Below are positions 2,017 through 63,600 of a stretch of DNA of 64,000 nucleotides, piece by piece. The notes beneath the pieces were generated by a model. The model saw only the letters and a program-made list of their open reading frames with translations, made no database searches and was not told where the DNA came from. The stretch's first letter is position 1. Every line of letters starts with the position of its first letter. The position numbers and the translations under genes are program-made. The DNA is from Selaginella moellendorffii (taxonomy: Eukaryota; Plantae; Lycopodiophyta). The stretch spans positions 420,657 to 484,656 of the forward strand of contig NW_003314346.1 in NCBI RefSeq assembly GCF_000143415.4, read 5' to 3'.

Positions 2017-2212
2017 AGCTAGGGTAAAAGGCTCCACTTTAAAAACCATGGACATGTTCTTGCCATTATCCCAGCGCCAGTACAGTTTAAAAAACGTTTC
2101 AACCAGCGAGTTTGAGGCCATCCCTTCCTTTCTCCTCAATTCTCTTTCTCCCCGTGAGCTTTGACTTCTCGCGAGTATCAAAGAGCGAGTGGAATCACTG
2201 CAAGTTTGCTCA

Positions 2213-2797
2213 ATGGCATCTTCTTCTTCCTCTTCCTCTTCCTCTTCCTCTTGGAGTAGTGCAGGAGCCATGGCAGCAGCAGTAGCGATCCTGGCACTGG
2301 CAATGAGCTTCCTGGCACTAGATCTTCCTCGAGTGACCGCTGCCTCGAGCAAGGTCCCGCGGCGCCTCCAGTTCTTCATGCAAGACCGGCAGCTCATCGC
2401 CAACAACACTGGCGTGGAGGTGGCGGCGGAGGGCGGCAATCTCACGCGCTACGACTTTGGGACCGTCTTCGTCATCGACGATCCCATCACCGAGACCACT
2501 TCCAACACTTCCAAGGTTGTGGGAAGAGGGCAGGGGATGTACTTGGTGGAGTCGCGATCGAATTTCCACTTGCTCGTCTCCTTCTCGGCGTATCTGGAGA
2601 ACCCACAATACAATGGGACGATCGTCTTCCACGGCTCGTACAAGGCGCTCGAGCCCACCAGGGAGCTCCCAATCATCGCCGGCACTGGGGATTTCCGGGG
2701 GATCACGGGCTATGCGGCCGTCACCACGCCCGTGAATCTGGGATTGTACGTCGTGCTTAGCTTCGATTGCTTCATCTCCTTCCTCCGCTACGAATGA
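2213..2797 (+). CDS. Dirigent protein (secreted), intronless
   Basis: Hydrophobic N-terminal segment, then FGTVFVIDDPIT, VVGRGQG and RELPIIAGTGDFRGITGYA dirigent motifs, with several N-x-S/T sites. Confidence 0.93.
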   Translation: MASSSSSSSSSSSWSSAGAMAAAVAILALAMSFLALDLPRVTAASSKVPRRLQFFMQDRQLIANNTGVEVAAEGGNLTRYDFGTVFVIDDPITETTSNTSKVVGRGQGMYLVESRSNFHLLVSFSAYLENPQYNGTIVFHGSYKALEPTRELPIIAGTGDFRGITGYAAVTTPVNLGLYVVLSFDCFISFLRYE

Positions 2798-15371: not shown

Positions 15372-16736
15372 ATGTCCCGAGTGGTTCCCATGGCTTCTTA
15401 CAAGCACCATCTCTCCAGGCAATGCATTGCCAGAGAGCAGCAAAGAGATCGGCCGAGCGTCAGGTGTGCCAATTTCGTGTGCTTGATTGGGTTGCTTGCG
15501 TTGGGCATTCTCGCAATCAGCTTGTCCTCGCTCAGGGTCGTGCTAGGCTATCCGCATCGCCACAAGCTGCAGCGCAGTGGCAGGCTAGATCCCCAGGAAT
15601 TGAATAGAACCTTGTTTTTGCAGTCGATCCAGGATCCTTGGACGCCGGAGGAGCTTCACAGGCTCAACCTCTTGCTGGAAGGCGATGGCGATGTGGTAAA
15701 TCTGGAGCTTGTGAGGCGGCGGTGGCAGCGTGACATTCCAGAGGCGGCCTCGAGAGCCAGAGCCGCCAGAGCAGCAAGCATCGATGTGGATTCGTACTAC
15801 CGTCACGACCACCGTCCCAACTCGGGCTATAGACGGATCTCGGCTAGAGGGTCCAGGTTGCCGGTGGAGCTCACTCATCCTCGATACTCCACGCGTTGGG
15901 CGGAAGCGTCTCAAGCTCTACGCTCGTGGCTGAGGAAGAAGAGGTATGATCCCAGTGTCATGAACGAGCTGGTGGATCAAGTGAGTGCTCCTATCGTCAA
16001 GGTTCTCAATTCATCAGCAACAGGCTCTAGCGGGCGATTCCGGCAGTGTGCTGTGGTTGGAAACAGCGGCATCCTTCTCAACACCAGGTATGGATCTTTC
16101 ATCGACAGCCACGAAGCAGTGTTGAGGCTCAACAATGCCAGAGTCACAGGTTTCGAGCAGCACGTTGGATCAAAGACGACGCTCTCCTTCATCAACAGCA
16201 ACGTTCTAGCTCTGTGCTCTCGACGTCCGGGTTGCAATTGCCATCCATATGGATCCAGCGTCGCCACCGTCGTCTATATGTGCCAGGCTCTACACTTCGT
16301 CCACCTCAAGCTCTGTGGCTCTCTCATGACCGATATGCCGCTGCTCGTCACTGATCCCAGATTCGATGCTCTGTGCATGAGAATTGTCAAGTACTACTCG
16401 CTCAAGAAGTTCTTCCAGAGCTCCGGCGCTGCTGCTTCGGCCAGCGACTCGATCGAGCACTGGAAACGCATGCACGACGGCTCATTCTTCCACTACTCGT
16501 CTGGGATGCAAGCGGTGATGCTTGCGCTGGGGATATGCGACAGTGTGAATATTTTCGGATTCGGGAAAGCTGCCACCGCCAAACATCACTATCACACAAA
16601 CCAGAGAGGAGAGCTCAACCTTCACGACTACGCGGCAGAGTATACACTCTACCAGGATCTCGCCAACAACAAGTCCAATCCTTTTCTAGACGAGGCCTCT
16701 GGATTCAAGTTACCGGCCGTCAGGGTTTTCACATAG
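15372..16736 (+). CDS. Glycosyltransferase family 29 (sialyltransferase-like / GALT29A-like), type II membrane protein
   Basis: N-terminal TM, sialylmotif L (CAVVGNSGILL..G..IDSHEAVLRLNNA), motif S (SSGMQAVMLALGICDSVNIFGFG), HHYH and HDY..E. Probable 5' UTR intron at ~14881-15189. Confidence 0.95.
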   Translation: MSRVVPMASYKHHLSRQCIAREQQRDRPSVRCANFVCLIGLLALGILAISLSSLRVVLGYPHRHKLQRSGRLDPQELNRTLFLQSIQDPWTPEELHRLNLLLEGDGDVVNLELVRRRWQRDIPEAASRARAARAASIDVDSYYRHDHRPNSGYRRISARGSRLPVELTHPRYSTRWAEASQALRSWLRKKRYDPSVMNELVDQVSAPIVKVLNSSATGSSGRFRQCAVVGNSGILLNTRYGSFIDSHEAVLRLNNARVTGFEQHVGSKTTLSFINSNVLALCSRRPGCNCHPYGSSVATVVYMCQALHFVHLKLCGSLMTDMPLLVTDPRFDALCMRIVKYYSLKKFFQSSGAAASASDSIEHWKRMHDGSFFHYSSGMQAVMLALGICDSVNIFGFGKAATAKHHYHTNQRGELNLHDYAAEYTLYQDLANNKSNPFLDEASGFKLPAVRVFT

Positions 16737-19270: not shown

Positions 19271-21361
19271 TTAAAATGGCCTCATGCTACTAGCTTGCGC
19301 GATGAGCGCCTCGAAGACCTCGGCCCTTTGGTTCCCAAAGGTACTCCGGCAAAGCTTGTAAGCCACCTCTCTCACCACTCGCAATGGCCCTTCGTCTCTC
19401 ACCACCGCCGACGATTCCAAGTACTGCCGCAGCTCCATCACTTCCCCGCACTGCATTATCAGCGATCGCCAGTGCCCCGGCACCGTCTCGTGCAAGCAGC
19501 TCACCAGATCCTCCCATGGCGGCACCGTTTGCATGAAATCCTCGAAGAAGTCCGACGATGGCATCCCGGCCAAGTAGGCCAGCGCGTACGAGGCGCGCAG
19601 CAGCGTGTCCGCGCTCGCGCTTCCCTCCGCCTGGAGCCGCACGGCTAGCTGCCCGAAGCTCGCGCACGCCGGGAGAGGACCGGGCACCTCCCCGGCCTCC
19701 GCCGCCGCGTTGATCTCCCGGAAGGCCTTGTCGTGGAGGAAGTTGAACTGCTCGTTGATCCTCCGGAAGGCCTTCTGAGAGCCGCGCTCGCTGGAGCAGC
19801 GGCGGCACTGGCACTGGAATCCCCACCGCTGGCACATCTCCTGCCGCGCGTGGAACGGCACCAGCGCGTCGAAGTATGGGAGAGTGATCTCCTCCCCCTC
19901 GCCGATGTCTCGAGCCGCGTGGACGAAGAGCGCTCGCCCGACTTCCAGCCGCGCGGCATTCGGACAGCACGAATGGTTGATGAAAGCCGGCAGCGGCCAC
20001 AGTCCGCATGACTTGGAGTTGAGGATGGCGTCGGCGCTGTTGCACATACCGTCGAGCTTGTGCCACAGGGACTGGCCGAACGAGAACTCCTTCACCACCT
20101 TGCGGACGCTGTCCGTGTCGATCCTGACGTCGCCATTGTTGTCCTGGTCGAAGGTCTCGGAGTACCAGCGGCTGTTGGGACGGAACAAGTCCAGCGACGG
20201 GATCTTGGTCGACGACATGAGGCTGCTCAGCTGCTGGAAACTCCGCCTCGAGCATGCCACTGCCGCCATGATCTTGGCCACCAGGTCCTCCTGGAGTGAT
20301 GTCGCCTGGCAGCTCGGTGGAGAATCGCTGTAGGCTACTGCCAAGGCATTGGTGACGAGCAGCGTTTCTCCAGCCTTGACGCTCTCGGTGACGAACAGGC
20401 CTCGACCGGAGGCAATGGTGGACTTCCGGATTGCCACGGGGCCGACGTAGTCCGCGCAGGTGGGAGCTCGGTCTCGAGCTCGGCCAGCGATGAGGAAGCC
20501 ACTGATGTCGAAACTCCCGTGCTTGCTCTGCTTGATACTCGTCTCGCACTGCTGGATGAGGCCTCCCATATGATCTCTCGACATCTCCGCCGCCTTCTTC
20601 ATGCACGCCAGCGCCATCTCGTACTCGTGGAGCCCGTGGAGCGCTCGGGCTTTCCGGCAGTGGCTCTTCACGTTGGAGAGATCCAGCTTGAGCGCGTTGT
20701 TCGAGTCAGAGAGCGCTTGCTCCGGATTTCCAATCCTCAGCATCGTTTCAGCTCGGTTGGAGAGAGCCACTGCCATCACCTCGCGAAGATTGGAGCTGAG
20801 AGTGATGCACTTTGTGTAAGCTTCCGCAGCACCGATCCAATCCTTGGACGCGAAGAGCTTGTTGCCTTCCATCTTCAGCGACGCGGCGCTGGCCTCCTCG
20901 GAGATGGGAGCTGGAAACTCACCGCTCGAGTCGGGTACTGCCAACACCCTCTCGATGTTGAGAAGATTGTCCACACGCAGCACCAAAATCCCTCCTTTCT
21001 CCCGCTTGAGCACCGGCTCCTTGATCGCCACTCTCATCCCCACTGGAAATCTCTGCTTCACGCCCGCATTGCTCGTGTTAGAGACCGCCACATTGTACAC
21101 GGACAGCAGCACCGCGCGCTCGCTCGCGTCTTCCAGCACCGTGTGGATGCCCTGGCTCTTGAAAGCCTCGCCACACAGCGTCCCAAAGAGCGCACACCCT
21201 GTGTGATGCTTCCCCGGCTTGAGATCCGCGAGTCCGATCGGCTGGAGCTTGTGGAGTGGCGGAGCTGCTGGCTGCGACATTGGCTCCACGGCCACTGCCC
21301 CGATCTTACCTCGCGTCGCGTGGATTTCCAGCACGCGTGCCTTGGTCAGCCATTCCTCCAT
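19271..21361 (-). CDS. TPR + SET domain methyltransferase (ATXR1/SDG35- and fungal TPR-SET-like), intronless
   Basis: TPRs (LKMEGNKLF..., ALSNRAE...), SET GRGLFVT, FINHSCCPN and GEEITLPY, post-SET FQCQCRRC. Confidence 0.9.
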   Translation of the reverse strand: MEEWLTKARVLEIHATRGKIGAVAVEPMSQPAAPPLHKLQPIGLADLKPGKHHTGCALFGTLCGEAFKSQGIHTVLEDASERAVLLSVYNVAVSNTSNAGVKQRFPVGMRVAIKEPVLKREKGGILVLRVDNLLNIERVLAVPDSSGEFPAPISEEASAASLKMEGNKLFASKDWIGAAEAYTKCITLSSNLREVMAVALSNRAETMLRIGNPEQALSDSNNALKLDLSNVKSHCRKARALHGLHEYEMALACMKKAAEMSRDHMGGLIQQCETSIKQSKHGSFDISGFLIAGRARDRAPTCADYVGPVAIRKSTIASGRGLFVTESVKAGETLLVTNALAVAYSDSPPSCQATSLQEDLVAKIMAAVACSRRSFQQLSSLMSSTKIPSLDLFRPNSRWYSETFDQDNNGDVRIDTDSVRKVVKEFSFGQSLWHKLDGMCNSADAILNSKSCGLWPLPAFINHSCCPNAARLEVGRALFVHAARDIGEGEEITLPYFDALVPFHARQEMCQRWGFQCQCRRCSSERGSQKAFRRINEQFNFLHDKAFREINAAAEAGEVPGPLPACASFGQLAVRLQAEGSASADTLLRASYALAYLAGMPSSDFFEDFMQTVPPWEDLVSCLHETVPGHWRSLIMQCGEVMELRQYLESSAVVRDEGPLRVVREVAYKLCRSTFGNQRAEVFEALIAQASSMRPF

Positions 21362-24434: not shown

Positions 24435-25571
24435 TCATGTGAGCAGATGCATGAGCTTGGCAGGAGCAGCGATTTGCGGCTCCTCGGAACAAGGCGGAGG
24501 CTGATTCAAGTCGAGAAATGGAAGCGGCTTGGTGGATACCGGAGGAGCTGCCTCGGCATCGATAACGGACGAGGAGGAATCGCAGTCGCTCTGATATGTG
24601 GAGCTCTGCTGGATCGCCTTCTGCTGCTCCGGCTCTTGTGGCTGCAAGCAAGGAGAAGATTTGACGAGCCACGCTGCCTGATGGTGGTGATGATCCAGCG
24701 CCGCTAGCGCCACGGCCGACGAAGAACTAGTGTTGTGGGTGGTAGCACCAGTCCTCATCTTCTTGGCGTCGGGAGCAAAAGCCTGGCGAGCGAGGGGGAG
24801 CGATGGCGGCGAGGAATCCACCGGCAGCGCCTGGGGGATGATCAAGGATCGCTTGATGCCATGGCCGCTGTTGTTGGCGGAGGAGCAGATGGGATGTTGG
24901 TGGTGGAGGAAGTGGAGTGGAGTAGCCACCGGGATGGCCTCGAATGGGCCTCGGCAAGGGCGGAAGCTTGTGATGGTGGAGATGGCGGATTCGTGGCCTC
25001 CTCCGGTCTGGACTGATGGGTGATAGCGCTGCTGCTGGTGCTGGTGCTGGTGCTGGCCATCGTCCACGATCTGGATCATGGACGAGGCGAGGTCGGGCAT
25101 TCCTAGATTCAGATCCACAACGCTGGAGGCCCGCCCGGATCCAATCATCCTGCTCGGCCCCCTCCAGGACGAGAGATCGCTGGCGACGGGCAGCGCCAGC
25201 GGCGGAGGAGGGCGGTGGTGGATCAAGTGGTGGTGGTGCTGCTGCTCGTACTTGGGACTGCTCCAAGATTCCACGGTGGAGCTCTGGCTGGTGCTCTGAT
25301 CATCGCAGGGCGGGGTGAAATTGGTCTTGGCCTTTGCTCCGCGCAGCGCCCGGGCTGCATTGTCGTAGGCCCGCGCCGCCTCCTCGGCGGTGTCGAAGGT
25401 GCCGAGCCACACGCGAGTCTTCTTCCAGGGATCCCTTATCTCCGCCGCAAATCGCCCCCACGGCCTTTTCCTCACGCCCCGGAAGTGCGCCTCCTTCACC
25501 GCCGCGCCGCCGGCCGCCACGGACTTGATGCTCGCCGCCGCCTCCTCCGCCTTGAAGCCACCCATTCTCAT
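24435..25571 (-). CDS. AP2/ERF transcription factor, EAR-motif repressor class (group VIII)
   Basis: [57 protein letters not shown] and C-terminal FLDLNQPPP. Confidence 0.95.
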
Positions 25572-28054: not shown

Positions 28055-29638
28055 TCACTGAGCGATGGCATTTGCGAGCAGCACATACGCGGACCCATGC
28101 CTGGAGTCGAGTCCAAGAGCACGACCTGCGACCTCGGCCCCATAGCCAGCATAGCCAGATTGTTGGTGGCTAATGCAGGAACTTAGCAAGCATCTCCACT
28201 CGAGCGCATCGGGCTCAAAGGGCATGTTGAGGATGAGATCCCTGGCGTGATCCAGATGCCCGGCACGCGCAAACAAATCGATCATACAGCAAAAATGCCG
28301 CTTGTTTGGGACCAAACCAAAGTCCATGGCCATGGAAATGAAACAGGCAACACCACGCTCCACATTTCCGCTGTAGCTTCTCGCAATCAAAGCGAGAGCG
28401 AAGCAGGACTGGTCGGGGAAAAACTCCGCCTTGATATGATCAAAGGTGTCCAGCGCTTCGAGTATGTGCCCGGTTTGAGCATAAGCAGCAAGCATCACGC
28501 TCCACGATACCAAGCACCGCTCAGGCATGGATCCGAGAACAACACTCGCAAGCTCAAGGTGTCCATTTTGCGTCAGGGCTGACAAAAGAGTGTCCCAAGT
28601 TACTTGGTCCCGAGCGGGCATTTCGTAAAACAAGGCCTTCACTTCTTTCACATGTCCATGTTGAGCATACGCTGCAAGTATCGAGTTCCACGACACAAGA
28701 GTTCTCTCTGGAATACTATTAAACATCACCTTGGCCTCTTCCACGCGGCCGCCAAGAGCATATCCCGAAAGCAACGCCTCCATGGACACAACATTCCTTT
28801 GTGGCATGCTGTTGAAAACGTCCTCGGCGAGCTCCAAATGCCCGTTTTGGGCATATGCAGAAAGCAGAGCCGTCCACGCTATGAGATTTCTCTCCGGCAT
28901 GGCATCAAAGGTATCCCTTGCTTCGCGAACTCGGCCCTGTTGTGCATATGCAACAAGCATTGCAGTTAACGAGACGAGGTCTGCCTCTGGCATGTCTTCA
29001 AACACGCTCTCACAGCCTTGGATATTTCCTGCTTGCGTGTGGGCGTGAAGAAGAGCCGTCCATGCCAGGAGATTCCGCTCGGGCATCCTATCAAACAGCT
29101 CTTGGGCTCTTTGAAGATGATGATGTCCACTCTGGGCATACGCGTCGAGCATCACAGTCAAGGCTATTAGATCCAGTTGTGGCATCGAATCAAACATCGC
29201 TTTCGCGGCATCAACTTGGCCGTCTGATGCAAATTGTGCTGCAACTGTCGTCCACGATATAAGATCGTGTTCTGGCATTTGATCGAGCAAGCGCTTTGCT
29301 ATGTAAAAATACCCCGCTGCGGCAAATGCTTTTATAATGGCTGTCCACGACACCAAATCCCACAGCGGCATTGAGTCGAACAGAGCTATGGACGCTTCGA
29401 GGTCGCCAGATCTGGAGAACGCGCCGAGAAGGAGATTCCAAGATATAAGATTCTTCCAAGGCATCTGCTGAAAGACGGATCGAGCTTGCCGAGAATGCCC
29501 GTTCCTGGCATACACCGAAATCATACAGTTCCATGACACAACGGAGTGGTGTGGCATTGAATCAAACACTCTCTTTGCTTCGTGGAGATTCCCATTTCGG
29601 ACATACTCCGAAAGAACACGGTTCCAGTCCTGGAGCAT
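28055..29638 (-). CDS. PLS-class pentatricopeptide repeat protein with truncated E domain, no DYW
   Basis: Tandem ~31-aa repeats (F..MPERNL.SW.ALL.AYAQ.G), HFCCMIDLFARAG, MPFEPD and terminal SAYVLLAN. Confidence 0.93.
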   Translation of the reverse strand: MLQDWNRVLSEYVRNGNLHEAKRVFDSMPHHSVVSWNCMISVYARNGHSRQARSVFQQMPWKNLISWNLLLGAFSRSGDLEASIALFDSMPLWDLVSWTAIIKAFAAAGYFYIAKRLLDQMPEHDLISWTTVAAQFASDGQVDAAKAMFDSMPQLDLIALTVMLDAYAQSGHHHLQRAQELFDRMPERNLLAWTALLHAHTQAGNIQGCESVFEDMPEADLVSLTAMLVAYAQQGRVREARDTFDAMPERNLIAWTALLSAYAQNGHLELAEDVFNSMPQRNVVSMEALLSGYALGGRVEEAKVMFNSIPERTLVSWNSILAAYAQHGHVKEVKALFYEMPARDQVTWDTLLSALTQNGHLELASVVLGSMPERCLVSWSVMLAAYAQTGHILEALDTFDHIKAEFFPDQSCFALALIARSYSGNVERGVACFISMAMDFGLVPNKRHFCCMIDLFARAGHLDHARDLILNMPFEPDALEWRCLLSSCISHQQSGYAGYGAEVAGRALGLDSRHGSAYVLLANAIAQ

Positions 29639-29686
29639 TGGATCAAGCACACGATCACCATCGCCGTGAGAGCAACGATCACGCTT

Positions 29687-35647: not shown

Positions 35648-37461
35648 TACTAAAGAGAAACAAAATGTTTTCCTAAAGTTCTAAAGAAAAATAATGTTTT
35701 TTGGGTTTTAGATTTGGGGGCCAACTATGGTGTTGTGTACTTGATGCTATCCTCTAAACCATGGTAAAGTTGGCCATAGAAACTTAGCCTCAAGAACCAC
35801 ACAGTCCGCTAGAGCCGTTGAGGGTCGATTTGGAGGTACCGATACAAACACTAATATTTCAAGCTCTCCCCTGAGAAATGGTTATATGGTAGATTCTAGC
35901 TTAGGTTAGTTTCCATTTTGTGTTGCGATGTTCTCTGTCTTCTCATTTTAATCAAGAGTTTAGAAAGATCACAACCTACTCGATGCTATCATACCTCCTG
36001 TAGAGGATGGTGTAGATTGGATCGTGGACAGAAATCTTAAAGAGCTGGATGCTCACGTAGTATGCAGCAGTGACACTGGAAAGAGCTTACATTTAGAATC
36101 TTGTGGAGTTGAGGAGAAAAGCTAAGAAATGTAAATACCTTCCAAAGCAAACCAGGAGAACTATCCATATAATTCTGCTCACGACACTGTCTTCTTTGTA
36201 CCAAACCCAGCACTGCACGAAACACAGTTAGTCCACTGCAATTAAAAGAAGCTAGAATCTCCTCTCTCACGCCAAAAATGAAGACTAGAATGTAGAAATC
36301 CAGCAAGGTCTCCTTCATCCACCTGAGAAACCAAAAGCCGAATCAACTGGAACGAATTCCAGATCCAATTCACTCACGGTGTGAGGAGCTCCATCCTGAA
36401 CGGCGATCCATCCGTGACGCAAGTATAAGCAATCGTCGCGGCCAAAATCGTGCCCAGTGCGATGAATCCCACCCTCGCCAGAACCACGCCTCCCGCCATT
36501 GACGAAAAATGCTTGCGGCCCTCAACAGCCCACGTATATGCAAATACAAAGCGATCCTGGAATATGCCCTACAAGCTTTTGTGACCGATCGACTGCTCCA
36601 CAGAAGACGAGGCTTCCCGGAGGCCACTCATGTCTGCTTGAGAATGGTCGCCACTGCCAGATGCCTCAATTGCGGGTGTAAGCTTGTTCTTCGTCAAGAT
36701 TTGAAAAATCTTTCCGAGAGCTTACGTTCCTGGCTCGAGGGGCGGCTCGAGCCTGGCCGTCAATGACCAAGCTCTCGCTCTAGTACTGCTTGAAAGTCAA
36801 TGCTGGCTTGGCATAGAGATGGCAAGATGGAGACCGCGACTTTGACAGATCAGTCAAGGCCGGCCCAAGGTTGATCCAGCAACAAAGGTGGTCATTGCCA
36901 AGAAGAAGATGACCTTGGATTGGAGGCCCTGGCGCACTCGATGTACATGGACGATCCGAAAGAAGTTAACAAGACCAGCGTTGTCCTCGCTCCGAGTCCT
37001 GTCCATGTTGGGTAAAACAGCACCTCGGCTTGGTCAGTCCACAGGGACGCACTTACACATCAGCTGCTAGCGACTTGAGAGCACAATATGCATCTTTATG
37101 TGCCCACTGTGAAGTAGAGTGCTCGTTATCGCCAGCACCACCTTTACATGGTGGCACCGCAATGGATAATTAGAATATCTTCCTTTGGGAATTCTCGACA
37201 CTTGTTTTGGAATCCTGGAATGCCGTATAGAAGCGTCCCATTGGCAGGCCGGAAGATTGCTGTCTCAGCAACGGATTAAACGTGGGGAAAACCATGTCCA
37301 GCTCTGGCGAAACTCCAAACCTAACATACAAAGTGGGCCTGCTTGTGCCTTCTCAAGAATGAGCACGAGCTAGAAGAATAAGTAGTAGCTTGTTCCAAGC
37401 ATTATAAAAAAGTGTCGAGCACCTTGATAAGGCCAAGGTGGAGCAGCATTTAGAAAAGGAA

Positions 37462-38991
37462 ATGGCGAGCTTCCTCAACGATCGATCCACCACCTTGAGC
37501 AGCAGCGGCGTTGGAGCAAGAGGATGCTGGATCGCCTCCAAGTCAAGGCCTGCCACGAATTTCAGGTACCAGCTCCATAGCTCTGCGTGGAAGGCCACTG
37601 CATTATCGCCCACCAAGAGGATCCAGCGCGAAATCCCTGGCAGCTATGGCCTCCCTCTGCTCGGATCCATCTCCGACCGCTTCAACTATTTCTACTTCCA
37701 AGGCGCCGAGGAGTTCTTCCGGAGCCGAGCTGAGAAGTACCAGAGCACAGTGTTTCGCGTCAACATGCCCCCGGGGCCGCCATTCTTCCCAGATCCCCGG
37801 GTGATCGTGCTGCTGGACCAGCAGAGCTTCCCAGCTCTCTTCGATGTCTCCAAGGTGAGCAAGCGCGATGTCTTCACGGGAACTTACAAGCCCAGCGCCG
37901 ATTTCAATGGTGGCTATCGCATCCTCTCCTATCTCGACGCGGATGAGCCCCGCCACGCCCAGATCAAGGCCTTTTGCTTCGACATGCTCAAATCCAGGGC
38001 CAAGAGCATCGTCCCCGGGATGGATTTCGCGGCGTGCCGCTGCTTCGATCGCTGGGAGAAGGAACTGCGAGCCAAGCAAGCCCCTGAGCTCATTTCCTCG
38101 ATTGAGGAGATCTGCCTGGCGTTCCTGACGAGAGCCCTCATGGATCACGACGCCACTGGAGCATCCGGCCTGAGCACCGAAACTATCAAGAAATGGCTCG
38201 CTCCACAGATTGCTCCAGTCGCCCTTCTCGACGCCATTCCTCCGCCCATCATGGAGCTCCTCCACGTCGTCCCTCTCCCCTTCGCTGTCGTCAAGAAAGA
38301 CTACGAAGCCATCGTCTCCTACTTCTCGGCCCACAGTACCGCGCTGCTCGACCTGGCCGCGACGCACGGCGTACCGCGCGACGAGGCACTCCACAACCTC
38401 ATCTTCATGGTCTGCTTCAACACTTTTGGCGGGCTGATCCGCTTGCTGCCGGAGGTAGTCCAGCGCGTCCACGAGAGCGGCGTCGCCAAGGAGCTCAGCA
38501 ATGAGGTGGCGGCAGCGGTACGCGACGCCGGCGGGCGGCTTACCGCGCGGTCCATTGACGGCATGCCGCTGCTCCACTCGGTGGTGTACGAGTGCCTGCG
38601 CTTCCAGCCGCCGGTACCGTTCCAGTATGCCCGCGCGCGCCAGGATATGGTGATCGAGAGCCACAAGGAGGCGTTTCGCGTGAAGAAGGGCGAGATGCTG
38701 TGTGGATTCCAGCCATTTGCGACGAGAGATGGAGTGGTGTTTGATCGACCCAACGAGTTCTTGCCGCGGCGATTCATGGGCGACGATGGAGCAAAGCTTC
38801 TCAAGTACGTCCTGTGGTCCAATGGCCCCCAGACCGAGAACCCCAGCGTGGATAACAAGCAGTGCGCCGGGAAGGACTTCATCATCTTGGTCACTCGCCT
38901 CTTCCTCGCCGAGTTCTTCCTCAGGTATGAATCGTTCCAGCTCGACGGCCAATCCATCAAATCGCTCTCGCGCCGATCGCCATCGACGTGA
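37462..38991 (+). CDS. CYP74 family P450, allene-oxide-synthase-like, intronless
   Basis: IPGSYGLP, STVFRVNMPPGP, VFTGTY, LSYLD, CFNTFGG, ECLR..PPVPFQY, WSNG and NKQCAGKD. Confidence 0.95.
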   Translation: MASFLNDRSTTLSSSGVGARGCWIASKSRPATNFRYQLHSSAWKATALSPTKRIQREIPGSYGLPLLGSISDRFNYFYFQGAEEFFRSRAEKYQSTVFRVNMPPGPPFFPDPRVIVLLDQQSFPALFDVSKVSKRDVFTGTYKPSADFNGGYRILSYLDADEPRHAQIKAFCFDMLKSRAKSIVPGMDFAACRCFDRWEKELRAKQAPELISSIEEICLAFLTRALMDHDATGASGLSTETIKKWLAPQIAPVALLDAIPPPIMELLHVVPLPFAVVKKDYEAIVSYFSAHSTALLDLAATHGVPRDEALHNLIFMVCFNTFGGLIRLLPEVVQRVHESGVAKELSNEVAAAVRDAGGRLTARSIDGMPLLHSVVYECLRFQPPVPFQYARARQDMVIESHKEAFRVKKGEMLCGFQPFATRDGVVFDRPNEFLPRRFMGDDGAKLLKYVLWSNGPQTENPSVDNKQCAGKDFIILVTRLFLAEFFLRYESFQLDGQSIKSLSRRSPST

Positions 38992-50697: not shown

Positions 50698-52456
50698 TGT
50701 AAGCAATTAAATTTTCCATTCTACTTTAATCATTTAACCACACTTCCAACCACTTGGAAGAGTCTCACTCACCACCTCTATAAGTCTTATTCCGGACTTG
50801 GGGCTAGCTCGAGAATGGCATCCCTGCTACTCAACCTTTACACTTGGTCCAAGTGCTCTATGTGTCTGATCCTATTATCGACACGCAAAGGTACCATTAA
50901 CATATCAGTTTGTTACACTAAGGCCATACCCATCCCACTTGGTCACACCGGTGGTCTAATGCCACTTGCATCATAATCCTATCTCTCAAAGACTGAGGCA
51001 ACTATCCATGAGTGATCATCCCAGATCCATTCTTTAGCATCTTAATGATGCCCACAGACATAGGGGATAACCTTCCCCAATATCCCTTTTCCAGTCCCCA
51101 CCAAGTCCCTCTTTGTCCATAGCCGTGTTTGCCACTACTGCCACTAGATCAAGGCTCATAGGCCCAACCACTAAGTCCTACTGTCCTCTAAGACTTTCTC
51201 ACCACATGACCATATGCTTAGTCATAACACTAAAGGATTGCTCCTTTTCCTTTCCATAGTCTAGGACTTTAGGATGACATTTCGGAACATTGTGGCCCTA
51301 TGCGGGCCTCATGGGTATTCTCCCCGCCTTCTGCTTTTGGGTGCTCTAGCCATGGGCTTAGAGCAAGGTTCCATTGAGCCATGCTAGGTATCCAAGTAGG
51401 TAGTGCCACCTATGCTTAGATTGGGAGTATCGATCATTCGATCTCCCGGGGGAACTAGAGCCGGATCTTAAACACTTCNNNNNNNNNNNNNNNNNNNNNN
51501 NNNNNNNNNNNNNNNNNNNNNNNNNNNNNNNNNNNNNNNNNNNNNNNNNNNNNNNNNNNNNNNNNNNNNNNNNNNNNNCTTGTTTGTCGGTCTGTATTCA
51601 CTCTAGCCTTGGGCCTCTCAGTGGTCATCTCATCACCCAACAGTAGGGTATGGCCTTCCTAGGCCAAACTGGCCTTTCCTGGCAAAACTGACTCCACTAG
51701 GGTCTTTAGGGTCCAACTCCCACACTCTCCCTTCTATACTTTTGGAACCCCTTGCAGCCCTCCCCCCCCCAGGGGACGATTGCTTTTGGCTTTTCACTCA
51801 CCAGCCCGTATTAGTATTCAGACTCAGACTCGGTCTTGGACTTGGTCTCAGTCTCAGTTTCGGTTTCGGTTCCATCTTGGACTCCATCTCAAACTCCATC
51901 TTGGGTCCATCTCGGACTCCATCTTGGGTCCATCTTGGACTCCATCTTAGGTCCAACTCAGACTCCATCTCGGGTCCATCTTAGGTCCATCTAGGACTCC
52001 ATCTCGGGTCCATCTCAGGTCCATCTAGGACTCCATCTCGGGTCCATCTCGGGTCCATCTCAGACTCCATCTCGGACTCCATTTGGGGTCCATCTCAGGT
52101 CCATCTTAAACTCCATCTCAGACTCCATCTTGGGTCCATCTCGGGTCCATCTTAGGTCCATCTCAGACTCCATCTTGGGTCCATTTCAAACTCCATCTTG
52201 GGTCCATTTTGGGTCCATTTCGAACACTTCCATGTGTCATATGTTGGTCCTCTTGTGTCCCTTTTCTAAAAACTCACTTATTGCTCGCTTCGTGCTTATT
52301 CCTCGAGCACTTCGTTGGGAGTTCCACTCCCACTCTCGACCTTTCAAGTCAAAGTTTTTAGTCCAAACGTTTTATGCTCATTTGGCTTTCAGTTTGGCCA
52401 CCACTTTGTGGTGCCCTTTCGACTCCACTTTGGGGCTTAGGGATTTGTGTCTCACA
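50698..52456 (-). mobile_element. Solo LTR with 5-bp TSD ATATC, inserted in an older gag-like remnant
   Basis: TG...CA ends and ATATC at both 50693-50697 and 52457-52461. Reverse-complement homologue of 56803-58699. Contains an N gap. Confidence 0.9.
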
Positions 52457-52461
52457 ATATC

Positions 52462-53420: not shown

Positions 53421-53520
53421 NNNNNNNNNNNNNNNNNNNNNNNNNNNNNNNNNNNNNNNNNNNNNNNNNNNNNNNNNNNNNNNNNNNNNNNNNNNNNNNN
53501 NNNNNNNNNNNNNNNNNNNN

Positions 53521-54055
53521 AGCCTAATTCCATTCCATGCTAGCTGGTGGAGTACCCATGTCCTCATATTAGGCCACTGGTATGCCAATATAGCGCCAAA
53601 CTCCGTTTGGCTCCATTTTGCGTGTTGGTCTTGGCATTGAGATGCTAATTACTCTAGGACTATTCCAAATTGCTCTATGCCATTGTCCCTTCGCTCCTTG
53701 GGCTATATGCTCGGGAGTCATTCCATGCTCCAGTATCATCACTTTTTGGCTTCATGCTTGGGAGTTTGGCACCATTCCTTTATTTAGTGACCCAAGGCCT
53801 TGAAACTTGAGTTCCACACCATTGTCCTTTGGACACATGGCACATGGAGGGTTTAGGTTCCGCTTCATGGTTATCCTATAGTAAAACACCATAGGATAAA
53901 TGTAAAAACCACATGCACTATAAGATGGTCATGTTCCAATAAAGGTTTATATTACTACTGCTCGAGTTCAAGAACAAGGGTGAGGACGTGATATTTGCTG
54001 CATGTGATGAAGTTGGTCACACTTATTGGTGTTATTGGCATTTTTAGGATTGACA
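53521..54055 (-). mobile_element. Probable second LTR-type insertion truncating the integrase
   Basis: Integrase homology stops abruptly after LGLVE, where minus-strand TGTCAATCC begins. The other end is in an N gap. Confidence 0.5.
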
Positions 54056-56802
54056 TTTCCACAAGTCCCAAATGACTTACCCAATCGGTCTGGTCTCTTG
54101 AGACATAGCATCGCAAATAATCCTCCAGCTGCCTATTCACCCTTTCCGTTTGTCCGTCTGTCAAGAAGTGTTAGTGCCGACAACTTGACTTAATACCCCA
54201 TACCTGTCTGTGGGTGATAGGCTGTGTTGAATTTCAACTTGGTGCGATACTGTTCTATGAGAGTCCTCCAGAACCTACTGGTGAAGATCTTATCTCGATC
54301 TGAGATGATCTCTTCCGGTCTTCCCCGTACTCGAACCACTTGTTCGAAGAATAGCTTCGCCACACCTTCCGCATCCACCTCCATTGTGGTGGGTATGAAA
54401 TGTGCCATTTTCGAAAATCGGTCCACCACCACAAATATCGCATCAAACCCTTCGCTTGGGGGGAGTCCCGTGATGAAGTCCATCGTAAGACATTTCCACG
54501 GACAATCTGGAGTTGGGATGCTTTGCAACAAGCCCCCACTAGCCTTAGTCACGGCTTTTACCTGCTGACATGTTGGACATGTCTTTACATAGTCTTGGAC
54601 GTCCTTAGCCATATCTGGCCAATGGTACTTTCTCTTGAGTAAGCCCATCGTCTTGGGCACTCCGCCGTGTCCCGCAAGAGGTCCGTCATGACACTCTTCT
54701 AAGGCCACCTTCCTTAGTTCCCCTTCTGGAACATACACCCTCGTTTGCTTGTAATAGATGAGTCTGTTGCGTTCCGCATAGCCCGTTTTTTCTTCCGTTG
54801 GCAGCTCACCTCTTTGGTGAGCTTCCCGTGCCTCTAGATTCCTCAGCAACACTTCTTGTGCTAGACCATCGTTCTCACATGTTGTCCGCACATCGTCCCA
54901 GAAGGTTGCTGTTGCGCTGGATATTGCCAACCTCAAGCTCGCTTTTCGACTTAGCACATCCACCACGATGTTGCTTTTCCCAGGCTTGTACAGAATCTTG
55001 CAATCAAACTCAGCCAAGGCATTGGCCCACTGACCTTGTTTCCCTCTCAGGTCGGGCTGTGACAAGAAGTGTTTCGTTGCCACATTGTCCGTGTAAACCT
55101 TGAAGTGTCTCCCAAGGTAGTGTCGCCACTCCTTGAGCGCCTTGACCACCGCAAACAATTCCTTCTCGTGGGCAGGCCACTTCCGTTGAGCCTTGTCCAA
55201 CTTCTTCGAGAAGAACGCTACCGGATGGTTGTGTTGCTTCAAAACTGCGCCCAACGCAAAGTCCAAAGCATCCGTTTCTACCTCAAAGTCCTTACCAAAG
55301 TCTGGTAATGCCAATACGGGAGCCTTCCTCAACTTCCCTTTGAGGTGGATGAATGCCGCCTCGCATTCCGCTGTCCACACCATCTTCCCTTTTCCTGTTT
55401 GGTCCGTTAAGGGCAAGGTTACTCTCGAATAGTGTCTGATAAACTTTCGATAGTAGTTGCATAGCCCCAGGAATGCCCTCAACTCGTGTACATTCGATGG
55501 TCGCTCCCATTCCTGGATCGCTTGGACCTTCTCCGGGTCCACCTTGAGCCCGTCTTGGCCCACCACATGCCCGAGAAACTTTACCTCTTGTTGAGCAAAG
55601 TCACATTTGCTCTCTTTAGCATACAGTTTGTGTTCCCTTAGTTTCTCAAACACCTTCACCAAGTGTTCGGCATGCTCCTCTAGCGTCTCGCTATAGATCA
55701 GGATGTCGTCGATATAGACGACCACGAAGTGATCCAGATAGGGTACAAAGATGTGGTTCATTAGCGCCGAAAACGTTGCCGGCGCATTACATAGCCCGAA
55801 GGGCATCACCAGAAACTCAAAGCTCCCATATCTCGTTCGACAGGTTGTCTTCTCGACGTCTTCCTCGACTACCTTGATCTGGTAGTATCCTGACCTTAGG
55901 TCAATCCTCGAGAAGTATTTTGCCTTTCCCAACCTATCGAATAGGTCCTCAATCCTTGGCAAAGGGTACTTGTTCTTCTTTGTATACTTGTTGAACAACC
56001 AGTAGTCTATGCACATGCGCATAGATCCATCTTTCTTTTTCACAAATAACACCGGCGCCCCATACGGCGACTTGCTCAACCTAGCATACCCTTTGTCCAC
56101 CAACTCCTCTAGTTGGCACTTGAGCTCCTTGAGTTCTTTTTCGTTCAAACGATAAGGGGGACGAATCACCGCCTCAGCACCCTCGACCAGCTCAATCTTA
56201 TGTTCTATCGGTCGTGCTGGGGGCAGCCCCGCCGGTAGCTCCTCTGGCATGGTATCCTGGAATTGGTCCAACACCCGCTAGATCACTAAAGGTACTTCTT
56301 CCGTTCCCGTCTTTTTGTCACTCTTCACCGAGAGTAAGCACAAAAAGGCTGCTTTAGTTCCTTTAGTGAGTTGTCCTCTCGTGGACACCAGGTTTAAGCA
56401 GGAATCTTTGGCCTTGGTTTGCCCTACCTTTAGATCTTGGGCCTCCACCCTAGATCTTCTTCCTTGGGTATTTGCCAGTACCACAAGGTTTCTACCTTGT
56501 CCATGCAGGGCTACCACAAACCGATTGAACCAATCCATTCCGAAGATCATGTCAAATCCCACCATATCGAACATGGTGAAATCCATGTCCACCTTCCAAG
56601 TCCCCACTTCGACTCTCGCTTGTTGAAGTACCTCATCGGTGCTTTGGCTACCTTGAATAAACTCTATAGTCCTTGGTTCACCTAGCCGCTGCACCGTTAG
56701 TCCAGCTTGCCGGACTATGTCTGCAGCTACAAAATTATCTGAAGCACCCGTGTCAATAAGGATCTTAACAAAGCTACCTCCGAGCTTTCCTCGGAGGGCT
56801 AG
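54056..56802 (-). mobile_element. Ty3/gypsy pol (PR-RT-RNaseH-IN), interrupted on both sides
   Basis: Protease LIDTGAS, RT YIDD, RNaseH ETDA..EKEL..YTD, integrase H..H..C..C, MDFI and ISDRD. One in-frame TAG at 56278-56280 and a 46-nt insert at 54158-54203. Confidence 0.95.
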
Positions 56803-57039
56803 TGTGAGACACAAAATCTCTAGGCCCCAAAGTGGAGCTGGAAAGGGTGCCACGTGGTAGTGGCCGAAGTGAAAGCCAAACAAGTGTAACACGTTTGGAC
56901 TAAAAGCTCTGACTTGGAAGGTCGAGAGCGGGAGTGGAACTCTCAACAAAGTGCTCAAGGAGCGAGCACGAAGCGAGCAATAACCAAGACTCCAAAAAGG
57001 GACCCAAAAAGGACCAACACATGACACGTGGAAGTGTCC

Positions 57040-57642
57040 GAGATGGAGTCCGAGACGGACCCTAGTTGAAGTCCGAGATGGACTCGAAGTGGAGTCCGAT
57101 ATGGAGTCCGAAGTGGAGTCTGAGATGGAGTCCGAGAGGGACCCGAAGTGGAGTCCGAGGTGGACGAAGACGGAGTCCGAGATGGACCTGAGATGGAGTC
57201 CGAGATGGAGTTCGAGGTGGACCGAGACGGAGTCCGAGATGGACCCGAGATGGAGTCTGAGATGGAGTCCGAGATGGACCCGAGATGGAGTCCGAGATGG
57301 AGTCCGAGGTGGACCGAGACAGAGTCCGAGATGGACCCGAGATGGAGCCCGAGATGGACCGAGACGGAGTCCGAGGTGGAGTCCGAGATGGAGTCCAAGA
57401 TGGACCGAGACGGAGCCCGAGATGGAGTCCGAGATGGAGTCCGAGAAGGACCCTAGATGGAGTCCGAGGTCGAGACCAAGACCGGGACCGAGACCGGGAC
57501 CGAGACCGAGACCGGGACCGGGATCGAGACCGGGACCGGGACCGAGACCGAGGCCAAGGCTGAGACCGAGCCCGAGCTCGAGTCCGAATCCGAGTCCGAG
57601 TCCGAGTCTGAGTTCGAGTTCGAGTCTGAGTTCGAGTCTGAG
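57040..57642 (+). repeat. Tandem minisatellite inside the LTR (GAGATGGA[GT]CC 11-12-mers, then GAGACC/GAGTCC 6-mers)
   Basis: Directly visible. A shorter, decayed version lies at ~51815-52220 in the solo LTR. Confidence 0.95.
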
Positions 57643-58606
57643 AGGGTGAAAGCCCAAAGCGTTCGTCTCCCAAACCCTGGGGGGTTTGGTGAGCTCCAAA
57701 AGTATAGTAGGGGGAGGACTACAGTGGAGCCAGTTTGGCCAGGAAAGGCCAATTTGGCCCAGGAAGGCCAGACCCAGTGTTGGGTGATGAACTGACCACT
57801 GGGAAGTCCAAGACTAGAGTGAATACAGACCGACAGGCGGGGTAGCTTGGTGAAGTGTTCAAGAGCTGGCTCTAGTTCCCCCGGGAGATCGACTAGCCAA
57901 TGCTCCCAGTCCAAGTGTGGGTGGCACTACCTACTTGGATACCAGGCGTGGCTCAACGGAACCTCGCTCTAAGCCCATGGCTAGAGCACCTAAAGGCAAA
58001 AGGTGGGGAGAGTACCCAGGTGGCTCGCGTAAGGCCATGGTGTTCCGAAATGTTGTCCCAAAGGCCTAGACTGTGGAAAGGAAGAGGAGCAGTCCTCCGG
58101 GGTAATGACCAAGGACACAGTCGTGTGGTGAGGAAGTCCCAGAGGACCGTGGGACTTAGTGGTCGGGCCGGTGGGCCTCGATCTAGTGGTAGTGTTGGTG
58201 AACACGGCCATGGGCAGAAAGGGACTTGGTGGGGACCAGAAAAGCGATATTGGGGAAGGCTATTCCCCATGTCTACGGGCATCCTAAGGATGCTAAGGAG
58301 TGGATCTGGAATGATCTCTCATGGACGGATGGTCCAGTCCTTGAGAGACGGGATTTTGATGCTGGTGGGGTTAGACCACCGGTATGACCAAGGTAAAGGG
58401 GCATGGCCTTAGCGTAACGGGCTGGTATGTCGGTGGTACCTTGGGGTGTCGGTCTTGGGACCGGACACGTGGAGCACTTGGACTAAGTGCAAGGGATGAG
58501 TGGCATGGATGCCATTCTCAGGGCTAGCAAGTCCCAAATCCTGAATTGGACTTAAGGAGGTGGTGAGTGAGACCCCTCCAAGTGGTCGAAGGTGTGGTTA
58601 AGTGAC

Positions 58607-58699
58607 TAAAGTAGAATGGAAAAATTAGTCGCTTACATAAAGTAGAATGGAAAAATTAGTCGCTTACATAAAGTAGAATGGAAAACTTAGTCGCTTACA
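58607..58699 (+). repeat. 3 x 31-bp tandem repeat of the LTR 3' terminus
   Basis: TAAAGTAGAATGGAAAA[A/C]TTAGTCGCTTACA at 58607, 58638 and 58669. Confidence 0.95.
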
Positions 58700-60606
58700 A
58701 CTTGGTATCGGAGCTGTTCCTTAGTCCGACTTTTATTGGTGCTAAAGTATATCACCATTGATGTTGGCATCAGAAGGTCCTAGGAGTGGGCTTATCCTTG
58801 AGGAGTGGCATGTCGAGAGGACATGGCTCTCCACTCAAGTTCATGTGTGAACTTCGGCACAATGTGGTGGATAGAAAAGGGCCAATAATGGAACGACTTT
58901 GGGATCTTGGGAACAGTATAAGGTCTCCTCAAAGAGCTGAGGATGTGATCCAAATGAGTGTTTGACGCAACAAACGGGCTAACGTAGTTGTGATAAACAA
59001 CTATAGTTGGGATCACGGAAAAAATAAAGACTCCAAAGCAATAAAGGAGTCACAAGATTATCCTCATATAGTTGAGGTTGGTGCTCATGAATGTGAGACC
59101 AGAAGTAATGACCGTGGGAGGTCAAATACGGAAGAGGGCTCAAGTCCTTGACATGGTAGCCGGGGCTACCTTTAATAAATGCTGGAACAACCCAAGGAGT
59201 TGGGGGTGTACTTAGAGATGAGTTGGTATTCTCATCACATGGACAAGTAGCCCTAAGGGGCAAAGGTTGCCCCAGAGAACAAAATCAAGTGTCAAAGCAA
59301 CACTTGTGAAAATAGTCCTTTTGAGTGAGGACATGAATGCAAGAAGTGTATTCTAGTGAGCTAGTGCCCGACAAGTAGGACCTTACGGGCCTGTGGATTA
59401 ACCAAGTCCAAAACTGCTGGATGACTCAAGTAGAGTCAAGGAATGGTCCTAAAGGACTGATGGAAGCATTTGGACTGAAGGATGGGGGGGATCATAGGAT
59501 CCAAAGATGAGAATAGAGGGTATCTCATCGATGGCGAAATGTGTCATGCTAAAGTCATGAGAAGGGTTTTCCCAAAAAGAAAACAACTTTGAAACAAAGT
59601 TGTGTGTGACTTCTATGGTGCAGTGCTAACAGATGGTTGGCATGAGAAAGAGTGGTATTGGTCTTGGCAAAGACTTAGACACAAAGAAGAAGTGTCATAG
59701 AGGTAGGCTCGTGGAGCCGATGGTGTGGAGACACCAAATGTGCCAAGGTGTGATACCTTGAGGCTATGTTAGTGGGTTCATGAGAACCCCTTGCCAAAGG
59801 AATCCCAATGGAAATGGGAATGGCATACCCTAAGCTGCAGAGCATGCCGTTGGAGTGTGGTGACCTAGATAATGATGGAGGTGTGGAAGCATCAGCAATG
59901 AGTTGTAGGACTTGACAATTATGAGGCAACTAAGCAAGAGGTGCAAAATAATTGGTTAAACGGGTAGAAGGTAGCTACCCAAGCCTTCTTAATGGCATAA
60001 GGAAATTGGATATACCCTTACGGGGGATAAGTTGTTTATGTTGCGATATAGTAAGTCAATGTCATGAAAGGAAATACTCATTGTCAAGGAAGCCGTCATT
60101 GGGACACCTGAACACTCTAGAACACCAGGAGGTGGTGTTTGATGTCGCGAGGGCAATAGATAAGGCCCAAGGGACTAAGTCCCTAGCGAATGATGGATAG
60201 AAGGTGCTATCCAAATGTCCAAGGTGGCAGAGACAGGAGAAGACTGTCTACTCGAATTGGACAAAGCCAAAAATGGAATTTTGGCAAGGCTAGCGATGGG
60301 CATGTAAAGGCCAATAAGCAACAACGTAATCTCGGTGTGTGGGATTATAGGGTGAGCATACTTGGATTGAGGAACCACTCCCTAGGCTATCGGGTAGGTT
60401 CATCCCTAAGAATACTTGCCAAGGCATGATAGAAAGTGCAAAACTATCCTCCTGGTCTGAAGGAGAATGACCGAAGGAAAGGTGTGAAGCCAAAAGCAAG
60501 AAGTATGGGGGTAGAACCAAACCATAGGAATAGAAGGGCATAATCAAGGTTGGTTATGCCAGCTGGGAGTGGAGAATCAAGTGGGGGCTCGAGGGTGTTG
60601 CCGCTA

Positions 60607-63600
60607 GGGGCGCGGACCATACTTGAGCTCACGAGTTGAAGAGTTGAGCTCACGAGTTGAGCTCAATTTTCAATTGTAATTTAGTACAAACATTATAAAT
60701 TTTAAAATTTTAAGGTTATGGCGAACCTAATAATTTAATAACTCTCTATATATTATATAGATAAAAATGTTCTAAAGAACACATTTTGTTCTAATAATTT
60801 AAATATTTACTACATGCAATGATAGGGACATTTGTTAGAACATAAAATAAAATGTTTGAAAAAAGAGTATTCTTGTCACTTCTTTAAATTTGTACTCTAT
60901 GCTTTTTGGCTAGTAAATGTTAGGTTTGTCAGAATTAAAAAATTATTAAATTTGAAATAAGATTCTATGTGAAGCCATATAACCGTTTGAAAGGAAAAAA
61001 AATAACCGTTGATGTAAGCTTATTGCATATAAAAGAAAGACTTGGTTCTTTGTAGAATACATTCTTGAGGGGTTTGTCGTAGCATACTGTCTAGAATTTA
61101 TAGATCTTCATTCACACTCTCATTCGAAAAAAGGGAAATACACCTACAAATGTCTATGGGTTCTAGTGTTGGTAATTTTAACTCTCACAATCTTTCTTCC
61201 CAGGGCTCAAGGGCTAGGAGATGCAATAACTATCCCATTGCACAGCATAACCAAATCACACAAGAGAATGAAAGAGAGGATAGTGAGGATAGTGATCATG
61301 AGTTGGAGATAAATGCAATGACAGAGGGTGCAACAAATTGGGTGAAAAAGAATGCCCTCTTACTTGTTTTAGAAAAATGCAATTCTGCCACTTTCAAGAA
61401 GTGCCCCATATGTTTTCTAGCGTCTGGTGGAAACAATGGCAATGATCAGTATGATGGTATATATGCTCTTGCGACACACTGCAACATCACGCACCCGAAA
61501 GACTACCATGAAATCTTTTTTGAGATGGTAAAAACAGAAATGGAGACACACGAGTACTATGAGCAGTATTGCGAGAAGAACACTCGGAAGCATATAAAAT
61601 GAAAAGTGAAATGAAAAAGCACATTTGTATTAATTATATAAAGTATAATAAGTTTTATTGATAGAGAATAAACATCGATAGTGTTGGAGAAATTTAATTA
61701 GCTCCAAAAGTTTTTTGCAACTCAGCAATAGTAAGGCTTGCTTGGTGTATATGAATATCCACTTTAGGATCCTGGTGCAAGATGTTGATGAAGATGTAGT
61801 ACATATGCTTGCAAGGAGCATATGCCTTCCCATGTTCCTCGCGCTTCGTAAAGTCTGGACATGTGCAAGAAGGAAAGTCGTGAATGGCAATTGTGTACTC
61901 TCCACCTTCTGTTTTGACTATGTACTCCTTTGCAAGCATAGTGATGTACTTCGTAGAGAGAATCTCACACTCAAGTGTTTGAGCCAAGTTTATTTTACCT
62001 TGCTTCTGCTTGGAGACGGTACCAATAAATTTAACTGCTTTACCTTTTCGTGCTGGCCTCCTGTGCATCTCTGTAGGAATAGTCCTGCTCCTGTCACTCA
62101 TGTCTCCAACTCTCCTCTCGAGATTAAAACCAGATTTCTCAAGGTTTTCAATCTCATCCGAGGTGAGCGCGACCCCATTAGCAACCGGCCATTCTTTAGG
62201 TACTGCATCAGGTTTAGTCATTATAGTGTCTTCAAGCCGCTTCGTATGGTTGGCGTCGGTGTTGCAACAATATAGCCAGCACCATCTTGAAAATCCTGCT
62301 TGCTTTCGTTCCCCATAGAAACATGGGGCTGGAACAGAAGCAGATTTTTCACCACGAATCCAGGCCCAACACTTGCCCCTCGGAAGCATCCCCACACACC
62401 TTACATTTGATTTTGCTGGCACACGTCGGATTGCCCATTGCTTCGGCTCCACACTACGGTAAGCAATTTCAACCTGTTGCGATGCACTCTCTTCATCAGC
62501 CACTTGAGGTGGCTCAGTCCGAGAGCGGTGTCTTGGAGCAGAATGGTACTCGACATCAGGCCTGTGGGAGCTTTTTGCTCCAAGGTCCGTACCAACATCT
62601 TCCCTAGCAAAGGAAAAACGACGCTTTGAGCGAACAGTCTTCATATCACCAATAGAAGCTCGGGGAGTGTACTCCATAGATGTGCCACGGACCACTTCCT
62701 CAACTGCAGTTGCCACTGTTCGGGCGGGTGGAGTTAATTTTCTCTTCATCCTATCATGTAACATCTCAACAGAAGGCCCTGTTNNNNNNNNNNNNNNNNN
62801 NNNNNNNNNNNNNNNNNNNNNNNNNNNNNNNNNNNNNNNNNNNNNNNNNNNNNNNNNNNNNNNNNNNNNNNNNNNNNNNNNNNNNNNNNNNNNNNNNNNN
62901 NNNNNNNNNNNNNNNNNNNNNNNNNNNNNNNNNNNNNNNNNNNNNNNNNNNNNNNNNNNNNNNNNNNNNNNNNNNNNNNNNNNNNNNNNNNNNNNNNNNN
63001 NNNNNNNNNNNNNNNNNNNNNNNNNNNNNNNNNNNNNNNNNNNNNNNNNNNNNNNNNNNNNNNNNNNNNNNNNNNNNNNACCATGACTTGAGTTGTGGTA
63101 GGCAACTTATGTTTGTATGGCCATCTTCATGCCACCACATTCGGATCTCATTTGCTTTTGCCTCATGCTCTTCTTCAGAAGGTGCAACCTACCATTGTTT
63201 GCACAACTCCTTAAATATTGATTGAAACTCTGGCTTGATAAGGTGGCAGTGCTGGTTTAGGCTTTGAGCCCAATGGAACTCACAAGTCCTCTCACGACCT
63301 TCCAATGGTTGACCATTCCCAAAAACTGCTCGGATACCATTCCAGTTTGCACCAGCCCCATCTGCCATGAAACCACGAAAGTTTGCAGGCTTACCAGTCC
63401 GCTTTAGGACAATATCAGAGAGGGACTTCCAAAATATTTCCTGTGCTGTCTGGTCTTGTACTTTAAACTCTGCTGTCGCAATTGTTAAATTACAACGTAG
63501 CCTATAAAAACATAAATATTATAACAATTTCAATATAATGAGAATAAAAATTACCTTGGATCATATACATGAGCTCCCATGGTTGTCCAACCGGATACAC

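Follow-up and report, generated by a model that had tools for sequence, protein, structure and literature searches.

LTR retrotransposons copy themselves via RNA and introns are normally lost on the way, which is the basis of the classic intron-loss retrotransposition assay. The locus analysed here, a retrotransposon fragment within a 64-kb stretch of Selaginella moellendorffii DNA (the window), carries a 46-nt segment resembling a spliceosomal intron inside its integrase, and raises the question of whether this segment is an intron inherited by an element family, an inert insertion, a gain private to one copy or an error of assembly. We consider it probable that the insert is a true U2-type spliceosomal mini-intron, fixed and heritable in a very high-copy Ty3/gypsy chromovirus family, most likely SM1-Galahad.

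The insert and the integrase reading frame

The element copy in the window is a dead fragment of 2.75 kb, which lies on the minus strand at 54053-56802 and is truncated at both ends. Its parts, numbered by window position, are as follows.

54204..56802, minus strand: upstream coding part, comprising protease, reverse transcriptase (RT), RNase H, integrase zinc finger and the integrase core as far as YHPQT plus the first letter of a split Asp codon
54204..54208, minus strand: GACAG at the exon end, with a second GACAG at the insert end (54162-54158)
54158..54203, minus strand: GT..AG insert (putative intron), 46 nt, 57% A+T
54190..54192, minus strand: TAA terminating the unspliced frame, four codons into the insert and before the integrase catalytic Glu
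54053..54157, minus strand: remnant of the next integrase exon, in translation the last two letters of the Asp codon followed by GQTERVN...

With slashes marking the boundaries of the insert, the minus strand reads ...TAT CAC CCA CAG ACA G/GTATGGGG...GGCACTAACACTTCTTGACAG/AC GGA CAA ACG GAA AGG GTG AAT. The 5' site is GTATG (54203-54199, in the context ACAG/GTATGG), the 3' site is CAG (54160-54158, in the context TTGACAG/AC), and a CTAAC branch motif at 54174-54170 places the branch A 13 nt from the 3' end; the insert thus agrees with the extended U2-type consensus AG/GTAWG ... YAG/ and also has a CTRAY branch motif. It lies in a Ty3/gypsy integrase, where it splits HPQT/DGQTE by interrupting the Asp codon, one codon before DGQTE. 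If the insert is read through, the protein continues as ...HPQTGMGY and then meets the TAA, which is the end of a 694-codon ORF (54190..56274). Because the exon and the insert both finish in GACAG, the boundary of the excised segment can be drawn at six equivalent places. The preliminary description of this DNA had given the span 54203-54158 with its GTATG start, branch site and CAG end, the unspliced stop at 54190 and the GACAG at either end, and all of these were borne out when the sequence was read again.

Such motifs are not rare. A count of the pattern GTRHG...CTRAY...YAG, with a length of 40-70 nt, on both strands of the window returned 25 mini-intron-like segments, compared with 30.6 +/- 6 in shuffled sequence, and therefore the motif pattern alone is not beyond chance, nor is there any enrichment in the window that would be a sign of a host intron type. 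On the element strand about 0.6 such segments would be expected by chance over 2.75 kb, and one, this insert, is present. The weight for an intron is carried instead by the exact fit of the insert to a gap in the protein alignment and by the read evidence. That splice-like motifs arise by chance around once per 4-5 kb of strand also lends something to a different reading, in which an inert insertion of 46-47 nt disrupted the integrase of a founding element and was carried along by a family mobilised in trans with the integrase of related elements, for example SM2-Galahad, any contig lacking the insert being from an older subfamily. We regard this as unlikely, for reasons which begin with the protein alignment.

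Seven intron-less relatives, with 35-55% identity by tblastn, align to the fragment in two blocks, one from about 56826 to 54205 and the other from 54170 to 54051, and by the tblastn coordinates their residue numbering is continuous across the insert, with no residue missing or extra. In one of them (P0029) residue 897 ends at 54205, residue 898 corresponds to the split Asp codon and residue 899 starts at 54155; the two alignment blocks seem to overlap by three residues, since the last letters of the insert likewise encode Thr-Asp in frame, a consequence of the GACAG repeat. From this colinearity it follows that the insert is a 46-nt interruption of an otherwise colinear integrase, and the earlier claim that its removal restores the integrase motif is upheld by the gapless residue numbering of the relatives.

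The nearest relatives in the databases, at approximately 50% identity, have an uninterrupted HPQTDGQTE, and the sister family SM2-Galahad is described as having one ORF; on the strength of these comparisons the insert is a lineage-specific gain within this element lineage. A search of protein databases for sister copies (380-1207 aa, 128-406 aa) found only relatives of around 50% identity, from Closterium, legumes and metagenomes, the family itself being absent from that collection, and a scan of the metagenome contigs with the exact exon/insert boundary pattern gave 0 matches. Several relatives of about 250 aa end at one and the same spot, and an intron at another site was considered for these and rejected. 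The JGI metagenome contig L001 carries, at 4640-5300, a gypsy element which is around 50% identical and has an unbroken HPQTDGQTE, a dead copy without the intron; its integrase ORF is closed by a plain in-frame TAA, at a position occupied by Gln in sister proteins, and other related ORFs, several in number, stop there too.

The insert in DNA and RNA-type sequence data

The insert was followed in DNA-type contigs (X1, 210 Mb of contigs), in RNA-type contigs from two different studies (X16 and X18) and in raw RNA reads (X23). The RNA type of X16 is a guess, based on its transcriptome-like make-up of 26 Mb in 72,000 records with long contigs of low depth; the DNA contigs of the family shatter into pieces of about 120 nt.

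In X1 the summed depth is ~0.6-1.0 million along 54023-56842, and the family is therefore extremely abundant. The middle of the insert is spanned by at least 23 distinct DNA contigs. Of the 46 insert positions, 40 fall in the bin 54164-54304, whose depth of 844k compares with 872k for the next bin; from this, simple arithmetic gives about 780k for the insert, the same as for the exons. At the centre of the insert (54179-54183) the depth decreases to 30k-100k, with three different 1-nt insertions at the same place, presumably reflecting indel or length variation among copies which clips the alignments. An error of assembly or sequencing, such that the 46 nt would be absent from real DNA, might be suspected in a gapped scaffold with runs of N at 53421-53520 and 62784-63079, but the insert is crossed by those DNA contigs, at least 23 in number and from another data set, and by one RNA-type contig, and an artefact is scarcely credible.

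That RNA-type contig, record 14 of X18, covers 54053-54342 unbroken and retains the insert in a 47-nt form, with one extra letter and one substitution; the insert of the window copy is thus 1 nt shorter (46 vs 47 nt). In a second contig, record 9 of X16 (1083 nt, depth 9.4), letters 1-326 match 54204-54529 and letters 327-431 match 54053-54157. What this contig lacks is exactly 54158-54203, the joint being read from its aligned pieces and the RNA nature of X16 being only guessed. The two contigs share differences from the window at 54098, 54227, 54258, 54319 and 54328 and therefore belong to one subfamily, and we infer that the form lacking the insert is the product of splicing.

The inert insertion introduced above gains from the fact that the insert-less form is represented by one contig only, from a library whose type is guessed, and SM2-Galahad, reported with one uninterrupted ORF, provides a source of integrase in trans (PMC3350952). 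Against it, the absent stretch is bounded exactly by GT..AG and its absence restores the frame residue for residue, whilst the insert-less and insert-bearing contigs have the same flanking variants. Further, the joint 54204>54157 is not found among the best-supported X1 DNA joints listed (depths 270-1021, some joints being uncounted at this depth) in a family whose depth is near a million, although rare intron-less DNA copies may exist. Nor would a functionless insert that breaks the reading frame be expected to keep its GT, branch motif and AG in so large a family. The raw RNA reads have little bearing on the matter: 237 X23 reads aligned to the window, of which 235 are partial matches to a tandem array at 57266-57688, and only one or two lie on the pol region, too few for a junction count or for a ratio of spliced to unspliced RNA.

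As to the origin of the insert, the preliminary description had offered two readings: a family-wide heritable intron, or an intron gained de novo in a copy that is still young. The former has a good probability, being supported by independent DNA- and RNA-type contigs with the insert and one RNA-type contig with its exact removal. The latter, by which 41 bp of filler DNA and a 5-bp duplication of GACAG would have been left in the window copy alone by a repaired break or an introner-like element, is very improbable. It does draw on the GACAG with which exon and insert both terminate, but the CAG of this repeat is splice consensus and is to be expected at both sites, so that only two further letters match, a coincidence of roughly 1 in 16; as a sign of a target duplication the repeat is weak evidence. 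The copy is, moreover, old and truncated and not young, and the insert is present in many other contigs, from independent runs, that differ at many flanking positions and include the 47-nt version.

The suggestion that part of the insert is local filler DNA resembling 59340-59374 proved right in that one exact 10-mer is shared, but the likeness is at chance level and filler DNA from there was rejected: the best local score of the insert elsewhere in the window is 23, compared with 23.6 +/- 1.8 for shuffled inserts, and 40 of 60 shuffles reach 23. No second copy of the insert beyond chance was found within the 64-kb window; an introner would be expected to have many near-identical copies in unrelated places.

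The fragment, its neighbours and its family

The Pfam matches in the fragment are RVP_2, RVT_1, RT_RNaseH, Integrase_H2C2 and rve, the last four on the ORF just upstream of the insert and the aspartic protease on the preceding ORF, which gives the domain order PR-RT-RNaseH-IN with a main ORF that ends within the integrase. An in-frame TAG at 56280-56278 (minus strand) lies between the protease and RT parts. Downstream of the insert the integrase likeness stops at about 54051 by tblastn and the copy breaks off at 54053/54052, and when the integrase C-terminus and a chromodomain were looked for across the window neither was found. Beyond 54053 the X16 and X18 RNA-type contigs continue for over 255 nt in sequence that differs from the window and stays in the integrase frame, as in the relatives. 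In the window the place of the remaining integrase is taken by repetitive DNA (53600-54052, summed DNA depth 56k-400k), which is followed by the gap of 100 N at 53421-53520.

A second intron starting at GTAAGT (54080-54075) was considered and rejected, as these letters are the codons Val-Ser within a stretch aligned to integrase. The fragment differs from the RNA-type contigs of its family at 3-6% of positions, and most of the listed differences between X1 and the window are carried by nearly all of the contig depth, from which it follows that the window copy is an outlier of its family. It is an old, truncated relic and no longer performs any of the splicing roles proposed below.

At its other end the fragment meets a different repeat, which is not part of the finding.

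56803..58637, minus strand: adjoining repeat, ending ...CA at 56803 in the manner of an LTR end

The matches of DNA contigs and of RNA-type contigs end at 56803, from whichever side they approach it. A splice at this position was rejected, since the DNA contigs show the same break and the same run-on letters and the junction is therefore one in DNA with another repeat. The repeat has an inverted second copy at 50698-52459 (76-81% identity by blastn), 4.3 kb away across the N gap; the two stop at the same terminus, at which the flanks of other genomic copies vary (loose-end agreement 0.49). The ORFs upstream of 56803 were examined as candidates for gag and contain neither a Pfam gag domain nor a zinc knuckle. 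A tandem array of 11/12/23-nt units (GAGTCCGAGATGGA-like), at 57036-57646 within this repeat and at 51818-52235, creates long low-complexity ORFs in several frames and so inflates an apparent gag-protease ORF of 473 codons (56278..57699), which was rejected as a chimera of the array and the protease. An abundant transcript matching 57266-57688 (X16 depth ~210; hundreds of X23 reads) has 20-30 nt in common with the array and then diverges into unrelated sequence; this RNA resembles the array in a short repeat, is otherwise unrelated and does not represent expression of this locus.

Elsewhere in the window a weak reverse-transcriptase remnant, a decayed retroelement, is seen at 11461-11955 on the plus strand (25-47% identity to gypsy RT, E down to 6e-12). 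The following host genes were recognised by Pfam.

925-2445, minus strand: DUF1295
15372-16733, plus strand: GT29 sialyltransferase-like
19274-21361, minus strand: SET/TPR
24438-25571, minus strand: AP2
28058-29650, minus strand: PPR
37438-38988, plus strand: P450
43784-44842, minus strand: F-box

The AP2 and SET/TPR ORFs are exact matches to annotated proteins, and at 90% identity or more they cluster with nothing but S. moellendorffii RefSeq proteins (375 and 336 aa) from another contig, which is probably the other haplotype; the host genes thus place the window in this species.

The description of SM1-Galahad, a Ty3/gypsy element of S. moellendorffii, fits the family. It is present in hundreds of copies of ~95% likeness with no intact copy among them. 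An ORF of 3885 bp covers PR, RT, RNH and core Int, and downstream of it lie two short ORFs (316 and 309 bp), with the chromodomain in the last; its LTRs exceed 1 kb and have poly-G tracts, and its PBS is complementary to tRNA-Met (PMC3350952). The sister family SM2-Galahad is reported with one uninterrupted ORF (PMC3350952). The family in the window has the same host, the gypsy domain order, a very high copy number (the X1 depth of close to a million) and a main ORF that terminates within the integrase. The main ORF and two short ORFs of SM1-Galahad are just what would result if its integrase held two introns that went unrecognised, a point of difference being that the word intron is absent from the main text of its description (PMC3350952). 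Judged by these described features, the window family is most likely SM1-Galahad. The fragment itself ends at 54053, so that the downstream short ORFs and the chromodomain are missing; it is also without LTR or PBS, with no run of nine or more G nearby and only PBS-like matches with one mismatch, elsewhere in the window. An intron of 46 nt fits the host, if the comparison is confined to the literature, in which the intron-length distribution of S. moellendorffii clusters with those of fungi and is sharply unlike that of other land plants (PMC6157073).

A proposed role for splicing and its relation to known systems

If the insert is an intron, the unspliced RNA would encode protease, RT, RNase H and an integrase that ends before the catalytic glutamate, and a complete integrase could be encoded by spliced RNA only. 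The DNA copies keep the intron and the RNA that was reverse-transcribed must therefore have been unspliced; the packaged template would then presumably be the unspliced RNA. Splicing would create two pools of transcripts, one serving as template and the other as integrase-competent mRNA, and would set the dose of integrase, as in Ogre, and by this analogy a regulatory role for the splicing of the intron may be proposed. The fullest form of the model, in which packaging and reverse transcription are confined to intron-retaining RNA and active integrase comes from spliced RNA alone, is put forward tentatively, as a possibility that we hold with clearly less confidence than the existence of the intron.

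The exceptions to intron loss among plant elements that are named in a recent review are the legume Ogre elements and the Gag splice of Ty1/copia elements (PMC12786077). With Ogre, also an LTR retrotransposon, the Selaginella family would have in common a spliceosomal intron which persists in the DNA copies and interrupts the polyprotein, so that the whole protein can come only from spliced RNA and the copied template must be unspliced; both forms appear to be present. However, the intron of Ogre lies between protease and RT, whereas the Selaginella insert lies in the catalytic core of the integrase; the insert is 46-47 nt, compared with an average of 172-274 bp for the Ogre intron region (PMC6317226); and the element is chromovirus-like, from a lycophyte, and not of the Tat/Ogre lineage. 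Unspliced Selaginella RNA would still give RT and RNase H and would be without complete integrase only. The Selaginella element would work like Ogre but, with its intron at a different position, is not a member of that group.

In EVADE, other Ty1/copia elements and BARE it is likewise the splicing machinery of the host that sorts transcripts into pools of different coding capacity, but there the full polyprotein is encoded by RNA that stays unspliced, and splicing takes out Pol and raises Gag (PMC12786077, PMC3735527). In the Selaginella element the arrangement would be the opposite: the unspliced RNA would be integrase-defective and splicing would complete the integrase. The short direct repeat at the exon end and intron end (GACAG) is also reminiscent of introners and of introns gained by repair of breaks; in contrast to introners, the insert has, as far as tested, been handed down in a retrotransposon family and has not dispersed through host genes. 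A search of the literature found no report of a lycophyte chromovirus with an intron in the catalytic core of its integrase. The case comes from a lineage and a host other than those of Ogre, and its intron site withholds only the active site of integrase.

The window copy is one more old witness to the inheritance of this intron and adds nothing on activity. A second independent case would show that retention of an intron through selective use of unspliced RNA is a recurrent strategy, and would explain why no intact copies of SM1-Galahad have been described; annotation pipelines for transposable elements that assume uninterrupted ORFs would misjudge intron-bearing families as dead. If the splicing model is true, an Ogre-like strategy arose independently in a chromovirus, within the integrase catalytic core, and the host spliceosome, acting on mini-introns of host size, would determine how fast one of the most abundant elements in Selaginella integrates.
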